Shown here piece after piece: positions 2,417 to 7,720 of a stretch of DNA of 8,177 bases. The position numbers were made by a program, and so were the translations under genes. The DNA comes from Octopus sinensis. Taxonomy: Eukaryota. The notes beneath the pieces were generated by a model. The model ran no database searches. It was not told the origin of the DNA and worked only from the letters and a program-made list of their open reading frames with translations. How positions within the stretch are numbered: position 1 is the first letter of the stretch; each line of letters starts with the position of its first letter. The stretch spans positions 1 to 8,177 of the forward strand of contig NW_021828538.1 in NCBI RefSeq assembly GCF_006345805.1, written 5' to 3'.

Positions 2417-3546
2417 TACATATATATATACCGAGGTTAGACAAATTTATGATCTTCCAGGAATACGTGAAATGATTCTTTCCGGAAAGAGTGGGTCTCG
2501 AATCAAAGAAAATCTATAACAAATCGGTTGTGAATATTGATCTGAAAAACTCTTTTACATAGAAACGCCCGACCACATGTTATACGTTAATTCAGTTTTA
2601 TACATCATCCCCATTAGAATTTATTCATTTAATTAACTATAATTTTAACAATGAGACATTTAAATGTGTAAATAATTAATAGTGTTTAATATAACAGAAT
2701 ATTCAAAGAGTTTATTAAATTACATTTAATTAAGGGATATAATCACGTTATCTAATACAATTAGAGTGAACAATTAGTGAAATCTTTAAATAAACAAGTA
2801 CGTAATTATATAACACTTAGGTTTAATATTAGTTAATGTAATACAATCTCCAGAAGTTAAGGCGTCTGATGCCTGGTAGTTGAATAATAACCGAATACAA
2901 GAATTTAATAAAGTATAAAAAATAATTATTACCGACAGAATCAGTATTAATACGAAATCGTAATACTCCGCCTCACATAATCGCTTTTGTGTTAGAACAA
3001 AGGATACTGCGAAATGTATCACGAGAGAACCTGCCATATAATATTTGGGTGCGTTTAAGCACTCTTGTTTAGATCGTGTGATCAGATCACGTGATTTCGG
3101 TTTCCCCTGGCCATATCAGAGTTAGACTCTCGACTGCTACTTTAAAGCAGAAATATCTCTGCCAGAGATATATATATACAAATCACAGTGCCTAATAGAG
3201 TTTAACTTCGTTAATGTGTTTGAAAAGAATATGTATTTTGAATGTAACAAATAAAAAATTATTCTGCAAGAATTAATGAATTCCAAGAAATTTTAAACAA
3301 TTAGGAATTTGGAAACATTTCAAGAAGTTGATAAAAAAAAGTTTCTCCCGCCCCACGATGGGTCTCTTACTCATCTGTCTGTCTTATTCATATGTCCGGT
3401 TTGTCTTCTCGCGATGCAATTTTTCCTGTTCAATATTTGCCGATGCCGACAAGAATAATTTTTTCGCGGTCGTTTGTGTCTTTATATTCTCTTAAGTACG
3501 CACCCGATACTACATGTTGTAGTACTCTATGAACACATACAAGTTG

Positions 3547-3584
3547 TTGGTAAGCAAGCTACTTACCACATAGCCACTCCTACG

Positions 3585-3586
<2 letters not shown>
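3547..3586 (-). mobile_element. Isolated 5' head fragment of the same tRNA-SINE family as 3647-4052
   Basis: TTGGTAAGCAAGCTACTTACCACATAGCCACTCCTACGCC matches 4013-4052 at 38 of 40 positions. It contains the A box but not the B box. Confidence 0.9.
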
Positions 3587-3626
<40 letters not shown>

Positions 3627-3645
3627 TATATATATATATATATAT
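3587..3645. repeat. (TA)n microsatellite with a CA interruption, lying between two SINE copies
   Basis: Read directly. Confidence 0.95.
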
Positions 3646-3646
3646 T

Positions 3647-4052
3647 ATTCTTTTACTCTTTTACTTGTTTCAGTCATTTGACTGCGGCCATGCTGGAGCA
3701 CCGCCTTTAGTCGAGCAACTTGACCCCGGGACTTATTCTTCGTAAGCCCAGTACTTATTCTATCGGTCTCTTTTGCCGAACCGCTAAGTGACGGGGACAT
3801 AAACACACAAACATCGGTTGTCAAGCAATGCTAGGGGGACAAACGCAGACACACAAACACACACATATATATATATATATACATATATACGATGGGCTTC
3901 TTTCAGTTTCCGTCTACCAGATCCACTCACAAGGCTTTGGTCGGCCCGAGGCTATAGTAGAAGGTAGTTGCCCAAGGTGCCACGCAGTGGGACTGAACCC
4001 GGAACTATGTGGTTGGTAAGCAAGCTACTTACCACACAGCCACTCCTGCGCC
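3647..4052 (-). mobile_element. Apparently full-length tRNA-derived SINE (family A), ~405 bp
   Basis: The minus strand starts GGCGCAGGAGTGGCTGTGTGGTAAG (A box TGGCTGTGTGG) with B box GGTTCAGTCCC. It continues with a CCTTGGGCAA-led body, an internal TA/GT microsatellite (~3845-3888) and an AAGTAAAAGAGTAAAAGAAT tail. TA tracts flank both sides. It resembles the abundant octopus SINEs as I recall them. Confidence 0.9.
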
Positions 4053-4344
4053 TATATATACAAAAATATATATATATCTGTATTCTATTTCGCATCGATT
4101 GCAGCTACAGCATGTTGATTACGTTTATTAAACCACTGATATCATGTATGTATAATGTAAAGAATAACATTTCGCTTCATTCTTTCAACTTTCTCCTATG
4201 TTGTTCAACCTGTTCGCACGAACCATTTATAGATTCTTTTTCTCTCCTTTACCTTTCTATTCCAGTGATTTCTATAAATTTCCTCTTCTATTTTTACTTA
4301 TAATCTTTTCTCTCACTAATCATTATATACCAGAATACATAAAC

Positions 4345-4878: not shown

Positions 4879-5211
4879 CCTTCTATCTATAAATGTTCTA
4901 CACAGCCTTGGTTTTTCATATCATTACGCAAAAAAGTCTTATATATATATACACACAATAGTTCCTTGGTTTACGAACGCCTCTGATCACAAAAAGTCGT
5001 GCTTCTATATCTATAACTATATATCTCTCTATATATGTATATGTGTGTGTATTATATATATATATATATATACGTTATATAAGATATATATTATGCATGT
5101 GTTTGTATGGTTGCTCTATACGTATATGGAAGGATATAATTAACCTGGTCATTTACTCCCCCATGTATACATTGTCTATATTGGCTCTTTCTTTTTTTTT
5201 CTATTTGGCAG

Positions 5212-5361
5212 TTGTACAAGGCACGATCCGATGTTCACGTTGTGATTCAAGAATGGACAGCTTTTATGGCGAATGCGAGGAGTCTCCACCATCCCCAACT
5301 CAATGTCCAGAGGTACCCAACTCCAAGTACTGCTTAATATTGAGGGAAACGACTTTTGCAG
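5212..5361 (+). CDS. Internal exon of a Ly6/uPAR (LU, three-finger) domain protein, quiver/sleepless-like; end of signal peptide plus Cys1-Cys5
   Basis: Acceptor CTTTCTTTTTTTTTCTATTTGGCAG (AG at 5210-5211) and donor CAG|GTAAAC (GT at 5362-5363); 150 nt, phase 1 at both ends. Translation (x)VQGTIRCSRCDSRMDSFYGECEESPPSPTQCPEVPNSKYCLILRETTFA(x), with spacing C-x2-C-x10-C-x9-C-x8-C and a VQG|TIRC signal-cleavage-like junction. It is a GC-balanced island in AT-rich DNA. Confidence 0.85.
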
Positions 5362-5644
5362 GTAAACCACACGAAATACATTTTATTGCGTACCTTTACA
5401 TATATCTATAATCGACATCGGTATAATCACTGGCGAATCATACATCATACAAACAACAACACCATCAACAACAACAACAAAATAATCTTTTACTTATAGC
5501 CAAACGTAAATAACCTTCGTCCTCTTTTTGTGTCTCTCCCGGTTGCCATAAACGCCATTGTATCATCCCGAGATTCTGCTTGTAAAAATCGTAACCATAT
5601 TTCGCTAAGGGGAACATAACATGAAACTACATTAAATTCCCCCG

Positions 5645-5995
5645 TCGCTTGGTTGTGAGTTCAAATTCCACCGAGGTCGACTTTGACTTTCATGCTTTCG
5701 GGGTTGATAAACTAAATACATATTTCTTTACTACTCACAAGGGGCTAAACACAGATAGGACAAACAAGGACAGATAAACGGATTAAGTCGATTACATCGA
5801 ACCCAGTGCGTAACTGGTACTTAATTTATCGACCCCGAAAGGATGAAAGGCAAAGACGACATCGGCGGAATTTGAACTCAACGTAACGCAGACGAAATAC
5901 CGCTAAGCATTTCGCCCGGCATGCTAACGTTCCTGCCAGCTCGCCGTCTTAGATAAACTGAATACCAGTTGAGTGCTGGGTCGATGTCTGTCCAT
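5645..5995 (+). mobile_element. Older 5'-degenerate tRNA-SINE (family B-like), split into 5645-5719 and 5952-5995 by an inverted younger copy
   Basis: GAGTTCAAATTCC (B box) to GATAAACTAAATAC, resuming as GATAAACTGAATACCAGTTGAGTGCTGGGTCGATGT. Both halves are colinear with the reverse complement of the inner element. Outer boundaries are approximate. Confidence 0.8.
5720..5951 (-). mobile_element. tRNA-derived SINE (family B), ~232 bp, with a 14-bp target-site duplication
   Basis: The minus strand starts GACGGCGAGCTGGCAGGAACGTTAG (A-box-like) with B box GAGTTCAAATTCC (5867-5879) and ends GTAGTAAAGAAATAT. It is flanked by GATAAACTAAATAC (5706-5719) and GATAAACTGAATAC (5952-5965), 13/14 identical. 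Confidence 0.92.
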
Positions 5996-6090
5996 CTGGT
6001 AATTGGATGGCTTCTCTGTTTAGTACCTGTCCCGTTTTCATGAATAGTATTGCACACTTGTCTATACCAAATTCCAAGCCTTTATTTTAG

Positions 6091-6400: not shown

Positions 6401-6540
6401 TTACACGCTGCTTTTTAAGTGTGCCGAGAGATGTTAAAACGGAAATCAAAGAACGCATCGAACCGTCTTTTTCCATTATTCTTCTTATACATGACAGTAG
6501 CAAATAATCACCTGACCACATATCGCCTGCTACAGTGGAA

Positions 6541-7499
6541 ATTTTGTTGTGTAAATGTATGTGTGTATATTTTGTTGTGTAAATGTATGTGTGTATATTT
6601 TGTTGAGTAAATGTATGTGTGTATATTTTGTTGTGTAAATGTATGTGTGTATATTTTGTTGAGTAAATGTATGTGTGTATATTTTGTTGCGTAAATGTAT
6701 ATGTGTATATTTTGTAGTGTAAATGTATGTGTGTATATTTTGTTGAGTAAATGTATGTGTGTATATTTTGTTATGTAAATGTGTGTATATTTTGTTGTGT
6801 AAATGTATGTGTATATTTTGTTGAGTAAATGTACGTGTTTATATTTTGTTGAGTAAATGTATGCGTGTATATTTTGTTATGTAAATGTGTGTATATTTTA
6901 TTGTGTTTGTATATTTTGTTGAGTAAACGTATGTGTGTATATTTTGTTGCGTAAATGTATGTGTGTATATTTTGTTATGTAAATGTATGTGCGTATATTT
7001 TGTTGTGTAAATGTATGTGTGTATATTTTGTTGAGTAATGTATTGTGTAATTTGTTATGTAAATGTGGTGTATATTTGTTTGTAAAGTATTTGTATATTT
7101 TGTTGAGTAAATGTATGTGTGTATATTTTGTTGAGTAAACGTATGTGTGTATATTTTTGTTGTGTAAATGTATGTGTGTATATTTTGTGTGTAAATGTAT
7201 ATGTATATTGTTGTGTGATGTATGTATATTTTGGTTGAGTAAATGTATGTGTGTATATTGTGTTACATGTATGTGTGTATTTTTGTTGAGTAAATGTATG
7301 TGTATATTTTGTTATGTATGTGTGTATATTTTGTTGTGTACATGTATGTGTGTATATTTTGTTGAGTAAATGTATGTGTATATTTTGTTGAGTAAATGTA
7401 TGTGTGTATATTTTGTTGTGTACATGTATGTGTGTATATTTTGTTGTGTAAATGTGTGTACATTTTGTTGTGTAAATGTATGTGTATATATTTTGTTAG
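6541..7499. repeat. Minisatellite, 28-bp consensus ATTTTGTTG(T/A)GTAAATGTATGTGTGTAT, about 35 copies
   Basis: Units start at 6541, 6569, 6597, 6625, 6653, 6681, 6709 and 6737 (28-bp period), with shorter 18-26-bp variants later. The + strand has almost no C. Confidence 0.97.
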
Positions 7500-7720
7500 T
7501 TGTGTGTGTTTGCATATGTGTGTTCGTGTGTGTGCGTGTGAGTGTATGTGTGCGTGTGGGTGTATGTGTGCGTGTATGTGTGTGCATGTGCTTGTTTGTG
7601 TGTAAGTGCGTGTGTGTGTGCTATGCGTGTGTGCACGTGTTAGTATGCGTGTACGTGTGTGCGTCCTTGTGTGTGTTTGTGCATCTGTATGTGTATGCGT
7701 GTGAATGAATGAGTGAATGA
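7500..7720. repeat. Degenerate (GT)n/(GTGC)n microsatellite ending in (TGAA)n
   Basis: Read directly. Confidence 0.9.

Follow-up and report, generated by a model that had tools for sequence, protein, structure and literature searches.

The question raised by this locus is whether an open interval of 150 nt on the forward strand of Octopus sinensis DNA, at positions 5212-5361 of the whole 8,177-nt stretch analysed here (the window), is a genuine coding exon and, if so, to which gene and protein family it belongs. A preliminary description, made from the letters of the sequence, had proposed that it encodes part of a Ly6/uPAR (LU), or three-finger, domain of a small and possibly lineage-specific cephalopod gene, which annotation could easily miss and whose product might be a neural or glandular modulator. 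On inspection, the interval is bounded by AG and GT and has phase 1-1, its first two bases finishing a codon and its last base opening another; coordinates, boundaries, phase and cysteine spacing are exactly as originally given. The features discussed are collected in Table 1.

Table 1. Positions, within the window, of the exon and of the features associated with it (^ marks a splice junction, here and in the text)
Feature	Positions	Strand	Basis
3' splice site of intron 1 (polypyrimidine tract and CAG acceptor)	5186-5211	+	Sequence; conservation in Argonauta
Very probable coding exon 2 of the octopus Ly6/uPAR (QVR-like) gene, 150 nt, phase 1-1	5212-5361	+	Sequence, database match, gene models, Argonauta orthologue
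VQG, likely residues -3 to -1 of the signal-peptidase site	5214-5222	+	Full-length model and AlphaFold helix
Five Cys codons (5232, 5241, 5274, 5304, 5331), Cys1-Cys5 of the 10-Cys LU signature	5232-5333	+	
Internal ATG, wrong start of the shortened UniProt model A0A0L8GQ77	5253-5255	+	
5' splice site of intron 2, CAG^GTAAAC, phase 1	5362-5367	+	Consensus match; GTAAA conserved in Argonauta
Mechanical 122-aa GTG ORF, coding in its middle 50 codons only, the rest being intron in frame	5043-5411	+	

The exon and its splice signals

The acceptor context reads ...ctctttctttttttttctatttggcAG^TT, with AG at 5210-5211 (CAG at 5209-5211), and the donor reads GCAG^GTAAAC, with GT at 5362-5363. Both signals are unusually good for this DNA: 17 of 20 positions in the acceptor tract are pyrimidines, a count exceeded at only one of the 377 AG sites on the forward strand of the window, and the donor matches 7 of the 9 consensus positions, a score that no other GT site in the window improves upon. 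At modest splice thresholds, the forward strand offers only two AG..GT intervals that are open and 90-300 nt long, and just one of them, the interval under study, contains at least five Cys codons. The exon is well beyond what chance would produce.

Its translation, (V)VQGTIRCSRCDSRMDSFYGECEESPPSPTQCPEVPNSKYCLILRETTFA(G), starts with (V)VQGTIRC, ends with TTFA(G), and carries cysteines spaced as C-x2-C-x10-C-x9-C-x8-C. It covers the end of a putative signal peptide and, of an LU domain, loop I together with the first strand of loop II; Cys1 to Cys5 fall in this part, and all five are invariant when 12 full-length homologues are aligned. By tblastn, identity to the real protein begins and ends at the splice sites of the exon, and the 122-aa ORF in which the exon was said to be buried is indeed otherwise junk.

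Identity and extent of the gene

For the database search, the exon peptide was carried within a stop-free frame of 149 codons, of which residues 84-134 were scored against 5.8e9 proteins. A single cluster was returned (E=3.1e-16), headed by A0A0L8GQ77, a "UPAR/Ly6 domain-containing protein" of Octopus bimaculoides; a word-indexed search with the composite domain returned this cluster only. At 90% identity it has just three members. A0A0L8GQ77 itself (138 aa) begins at a Met inside the exon, and is thus devoid of the signal peptide and of Cys1-Cys2. The RefSeq entry XP_014779287.1, "uncharacterized protein LOC106875585" of O. bimaculoides, is full length, with 177 aa. The O. vulgaris member, CAI9740548.1 (102 aa), has an aberrant C-terminus after Cys7, where ...EENCV is followed by SWWKYPE, and Cys8-10 are lost.

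Both junctions of the window, 5211/5212 and 5361/5362, are used in the latter two models, which read ...AAMN^VVQG(T/A)IRC...TTFAG^VQIRF...; the full-length one reads MTYIQRFNSFGYPYTIFIGFMAAMN^VVQGTIRC...TTFAG^VQIRFARDC...DGCNSN.... Each of the two is identical to the window at 49 of the 50 exon residues and at the splice junctions, and represents the same gene, as orthologue or allele. The sole substitution with respect to O. bimaculoides is E in the window for Q, at ECE(E/Q)S; that with respect to O. vulgaris is T for A, at G(T/A)IRC.

We therefore regard the interval, with high confidence, as the second of three coding exons of the Octopus orthologue of LOC106875585, a 177-aa single-domain LU protein of the invertebrate QVR-like branch, and we place exons 1 and 3, with the same confidence, outside the window, beyond introns that measure from tens up to hundreds of kb. 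Exon 1 encodes the putative signal peptide, and exon 3 encodes Cys6-Cys10, the ...DGCN motif and a hydrophobic C-terminal stretch, a putative signal for membrane attachment. When the full-length protein was compared by tblastn with the window, one of the three coding exons was located and no other exon of the gene was found there. The recorded range of the gene is 256.7 kb in O. bimaculoides; the O. vulgaris model, which is defective, covers 340.7 kb, and an O. vulgaris paralogue covers 253.9 kb. In a gene that spans 257-341 kb, the absence of exons 1 and 3 from the window is to be expected. The spans in these two Octopus assemblies also bear out the view that the exon lies buried in long, repeat-rich introns. 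"Small", the word used for the gene in the preliminary description, suits the protein, but not a gene of some 257-341 kb.

The gene is already known: it is present in RefSeq and UniProt under the correct family label, and what we describe is an ordinary gene, correctly read, not a discovery. Its entries as LOC106875585 and in UniProt contradict the expectation that annotation could miss it, but the part of that expectation that concerned difficulty was sound, as three of the four public models are truncated or otherwise defective (internal-Met start; premature C-terminal end; exon 1 missing). The exon of the window has its value here, since it shows the N-terminal half of the domain as it should be annotated. 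A literature search found no papers naming LOC106875585, LOC115212746 or the accessions of the gene. New biology is limited, LU proteins being abundant in molluscs, with an average of about 83 per molluscan genome (PMC13719153).

Conservation of the exon and of its position

The Argonauta hians orthologue, GAB1609253.1, is named after O. sinensis LOC115212746, and its public model is without exon 1. Its exon 2 is also exactly 150 nt long and is likewise bounded by CAG^ and ^GTAAA; an intron 2 of about 6.7 kb follows, and the remaining protein is encoded by one exon, exon 3, whose acceptor is in phase 1. Alignment between the window and the Argonauta DNA starts about 10 nt ahead of the acceptor and stops at the donor, the flanks being unalignable. 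Within the exon, the two differ at 12, 8 and 30 first, second and third codon positions, respectively, and all five Cys are kept. The resulting pS of 0.92 (synonymous sites being saturated), against a pN of 0.18, indicates purifying selection on the protein encoded by the exon.

The exon plan extends to bivalves. The homologue of the freshwater mussel Sinanodonta woodiana, annotated as "Protein quiver" (PF17064), has three coding exons, all in phase 1; exon 2, of 132 nt and phase 1-1, opens shortly before Cys1 and closes, like the octopus exon, at the loop-II Gly. Phase 1-1 and the loop-II position are thus conserved between a cephalopod and a bivalve. The same intron position is visible in other database entries: three shortened ones diverge directly after the loop-II Gly, another has unrelated residues as far as the equivalent Gly, followed by exon-3 sequence, and the 367-aa model of A0A0L8ICT5, a paralogue from O. 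bimaculoides, continues through intron 2, retaining intronic sequence at the Gly position.

A cephalopod homologue, about 50% identical, is encoded by an uninterrupted ORF on 21 short RNA-derived contigs from runs SRR276660xx; 11 of them are shorter than 2 kb, and the other 10 measure 2-5 kb (2.4-2.6 kb in five examples). These contigs are spliced mRNAs, of the homologue rather than of the window's own gene, for which no transcript was found. No papers naming the SRA runs of the homologous transcript were found in the literature search. A "quiver" match in a squid cell atlas was discarded, as it is the name of a software.

These data bear on two other explanations of the interval. The window is dense in repeats, and its microsatellites yield many fake Cys-rich ORFs, which would suit an open frame that shows its cysteine pattern by chance, or a piece of an interspersed repeat. 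We leave this explanation practically no probability: the database match, the Argonauta orthologue and purifying selection, taken as sequence evidence, already refute it, and orthologous exons are found in other genera. Membership of a high-copy repeat, named from the start as a ground for abandoning the exon, is contradicted by the small size of the 90% cluster and by the window itself, where no second copy of the exon was found.

The other explanation, a relic or pseudogenised LU exon surviving intact in a dead gene, might draw on the absence of exons 1 and 3 from the window and on a peptide that is one residue off each of two Octopus models. It is very unlikely nevertheless. Missing neighbours are what the gene spans predict, and a single difference from each of two species, together with strong purifying selection with respect to Argonauta, argues against a dead gene; moreover, the exon has neither stop nor frameshift, retains all five Cys, and is flanked by splice signals which rank among the best of the window. 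We thus maintain that the exon belongs to the orthologue of LOC106875585.

Two additional features were observed in Sinanodonta. Just within intron 2 (locus positions 3563-3834), about four tandem copies of the exon-2 3' end (KYCIKYEGTIRKG) occur with a period of about 76 bp, and the same 139-aa protein is encoded twice, 5.2 Mb apart on one chromosome.

Family membership and predicted fold

LU genes are defined by three exons, one for the signal peptide and two for the domain, flanked by phase-1 introns, and the domain by 60-90 residues, 10 plesiotypic cysteines and an Asn directly after Cys10 (PMC6600238). In XP_014779287.1 the domain extends from Cys33 to Asn118, that is 86 residues with 10 Cys, all invariant in the 12 homologues and five of them encoded in the window. 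The Asn follows Cys10 within ...DGCN(S), where G116, C117 and N118 are invariant; this part belongs to exon 3, outside the window. As for the gene plan, the phase 1-1 of the window exon is matched by phase-1 junctions of exon 2 and of exon 3 in Argonauta and by the three phase-1 exons of Sinanodonta. The gene displays every LU feature tested: three exons, phase-1 introns, a domain of 60-90 residues, 10 Cys and Asn after Cys10.

Searching 1.84e9 representatives with a HMMER profile produced 17 matches at E<=1e-3. The profile had 138 positions, 13 N-terminal columns having been dropped, and Cys1-Cys2 contributed nothing to the search. Full-length matches share the 10 Cys, an invariant Arg and the terminal G-C-N, along with the motifs PPxPxxC, YCxIxxE, FxRxC and DGCN, which characterize the subfamily. 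Named sources are Argonauta, paralogues of O. bimaculoides (A0A0L8ICT5) and O. vulgaris ("Protein quiver"), the scallop Argopecten irradians, Sinanodonta woodiana and two mayflies. One mayfly protein, which takes its NCBI name from a centipede venom family, carries both PF00021 and PF17064; a precomputed PF17064 domain is present in three relatives. Cysteine-conserved homologues in other molluscs, which the preliminary description had called for, are therefore found in scallop and freshwater mussel, and with them and the mayflies its suggestion of a lineage-specific gene falls: judged by these sequence matches, the QVR-like family is common to molluscs and mayflies, not specific to cephalopods.

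Among Pfam models, the window exon alone matches only DUF753, with E=0.042. The whole domain aligns with QVR over the entire model (1-86 of 86), with 19.6-20.3 bits and E=0.0011-0.0019, below the gathering cut-off of 27.3 bits; the same model is matched by 9 of the 12 homologues (E<=0.01; best 2.2e-8). The Pfam comparison proposed at the outset thus gave a complete alignment to QVR, but one scoring below the cut-off, and no match to toxin models at E<=10. Given the score of the octopus protein, the matches of its homologues and the PF17064 domain of three relatives, it seems best termed "QVR-like", rather than a curated QVR member.

AlphaFold2, supplied with the 12-sequence alignment, yielded block-mean pLDDT values of 82-92 over the LU domain, and the protein is predicted to adopt the three-finger beta fold. 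When the model was compared with the PDB by Foldseek, the best 26 matches were all LU domains, with weak E-values (8e-3, at prob 1.0, for the best) and a target-normalised TM of about 0.5. The matches are Lypd6, C4.4A, uPAR, GPIHBP1, Lypd6b, the TGF-beta receptor II ectodomain, CD177, Lynx1 and snake three-finger toxins. A search of PDB sequences with the family profile returned Lypd6B only, at a non-significant E=1.6. The assignment of the interval to an LU/three-finger domain is upheld on several sides: two gene models, the 10-Cys and CN architecture, the fold search, the Argonauta exon and the bivalve exon phases.

Likeness to known proteins is of different degrees. The octopus protein resembles Drosophila QUIVER/SLEEPLESS and the insect Ly6 family (QVR PF17064, DUF753) in having one LU domain, whose 10 Cys open with C-x2-C and close with C..C....CN, as well as a putative signal peptide and a putative, hydrophobic anchor signal at the C-terminus; however, the subfamily has motifs of its own, and the likeness, with a sub-cut-off QVR score, stays at the family level. 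The LU domains of vertebrate Lypd6/Lypd6b, Lynx1, CD59 and uPAR match its predicted three-finger fold and its three-exon, phase-1 plan (PMC6600238). Lypd6 (6gbi, 6ib6) is the best structural match of the octopus model, and sequence identity to vertebrate LU domains is 15-20%.

Termini of the protein and possible function

Around the putative cleavage site, the full-length model reads MTYIQRFNSFGYPYTIFIGFMAAMNVVQG followed by TIRC, and AlphaFold places a helix at residues 11-26. This agrees with the initial reading of VQG as the end of the signal peptide, and the mature protein would probably start with the T encoded at window position 5223. Besides the hydrophobic N-terminus, sequence and AlphaFold model indicate a hydrophobic C-terminal helix at residues 136-159, and such a hydrophobic tail is conserved throughout the 12 full-length homologues.

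A course of events may be proposed on this basis. Signal peptidase would cleave the octopus protein after VQG, and five disulfides, expected in the LU pattern 1-5, 2-3, 4-6, 7-8, 9-10, would lock the domain into the three-finger fold. The protein would then be tethered to the outer leaflet, probably via a GPI anchor; since about 20 extra residues follow the hydrophobic stretch, a transmembrane anchor is also possible. Once in place, it might act in cis on a membrane receptor or channel complex, tuning its trafficking or gating. Drosophila QVR/SLEEPLESS acts on Shaker and on nAChRs, and Lynx1 acts on nAChRs (PMC6600238).

A tethered regulator of this kind has to be weighed against a secreted three-finger protein of the venom or saliva type, working as a toxin-like effector. 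The LU fold is common to snake three-finger toxins, which are among the lower Foldseek matches and belong to the same fold class; NCBI labels a mayfly homologue after a venom family; and the posterior salivary glands of octopus are venomous. Unlike the snake toxins, however, the octopus protein has a predicted loop-I disulfide and a hydrophobic tail that may anchor it to the membrane, the latter kept by every full-length homologue. The family is conserved, under purifying rather than diversifying selection, and has members in non-venomous animals, such as bivalves and mayflies. Toxin_TOLIP, the Pfam model of snake three-finger toxins, gave no match at E<=10, so that membership of the toxin family is not indicated. 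We consider a venom-type protein highly improbable.

For a membrane-tethered protein, function can be approached by analogy, within a family of known functional diversity. A role as modulator of channels or receptors seems plausible and is tentatively put forward. A role in septate junctions or trafficking, like that of Boudin, Crooked and Coiled, would be a lesser possibility, and a co-receptor role of the Lypd6 type appears unlikely; something else would account for the remaining probability. A more specific proposal, which we hold to be quite doubtful, combines an ancient protostome QVR-like subfamily (PPxPxxC / FxRxC / DGCN), present in cephalopods, bivalves and mayflies, with the gain in octopods of a conserved extra C-terminal segment and of giant introns, the protein serving there as a dedicated neuronal accessory subunit. 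If this were true, Shaker-type channels or the expanded nicotinic-like (chemotactile) receptors would be examples of its partners, and the protein would be the cephalopod counterpart of Lynx1/SLEEPLESS. In any case, the analysis defines a small QVR-like subfamily, common to molluscs and mayflies, whose members are candidate channel or receptor modulators in cephalopod neurons.

Two features of exon 3 products were noted along the way. In their C-terminal region (XP_014779287.1 residues 136-177, GAB1609253.1 residues 109-164), octopod orthologues have some 20-35 extra residues beyond the hydrophobic stretch, with shared motifs VP.L.NI ... W..ID...Q; the extension is conserved in Argonauta, is missing from paralogues and from bivalve and mayfly homologues, and is atypical for a GPI signal. 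Cephalopod members of the subfamily also have a conserved N-x-T sequon in loop III (QNITAT / ENITAT / KNHTSH / KNVTAS / QNHTTH), probably an N-glycosylation site.

Other features of the window

Two frames on the reverse strand recall mobile elements. One, of 166 codons, at 612-1109 (...ILLYGSETWTLSKKLERRLEGTYTRLIMRAQNLSWKRHPT...FAGHCCRA...), has what we take to be a resemblance to the C-terminal part of a LINE ORF2, the reverse-transcriptase tail; no Pfam match was obtained for it. The other, a short frame at 5949-6077 (MEFGIDKCAILFMKTGQ...), lies some 600 nt downstream from the exon and resembles part of a LINE reverse-transcriptase domain; its 42 aa gave no Pfam match either. Scans of the window for tRNA and Rfam families found nothing.

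A weak tblastn match of the full-length protein, at 3624-3692 (E=0.15-0.35), was rejected as due to chance, as it lies in a (TA)n/repeat region and has no ATG and no ...MN G^GT end. Similarly, other Cys-rich frames at 6500-7700 were rejected as artefacts of a TG-rich 28-bp minisatellite and of microsatellites. The minisatellite, with a 28/56-bp unit (ATTTTGTTGTGTAAATGTATGTGTGTAT), occupies 6541-7497 with about 35 copies, and is followed at 7502-7703 by GT/GC-rich microsatellites; GC skew in these repeats reaches up to 0.92.

About 300 nt downstream of the exon, a 64-nt inverted repeat is found at 5656-5719 and 5817-5880, its arms being 88% complementary and 97 nt apart: it probably consists of two opposed interspersed (SINE-like) copies, or of a MITE. 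A 75-nt direct repeat with 89% identity (GTKGTTGGTAAGCAAGCTACTTACCACA...GCC), at 3543-3617 and 4009-4083, is likely a dispersed repeat of the SINE type, each copy abutting a TA-rich tract. Near-perfect microsatellites are located at 35-90, 2320-2371 and 3587-3645: (TAG)18.7 and (TA)26 are 100% matches, and (TA)29.5 is a 96% match.
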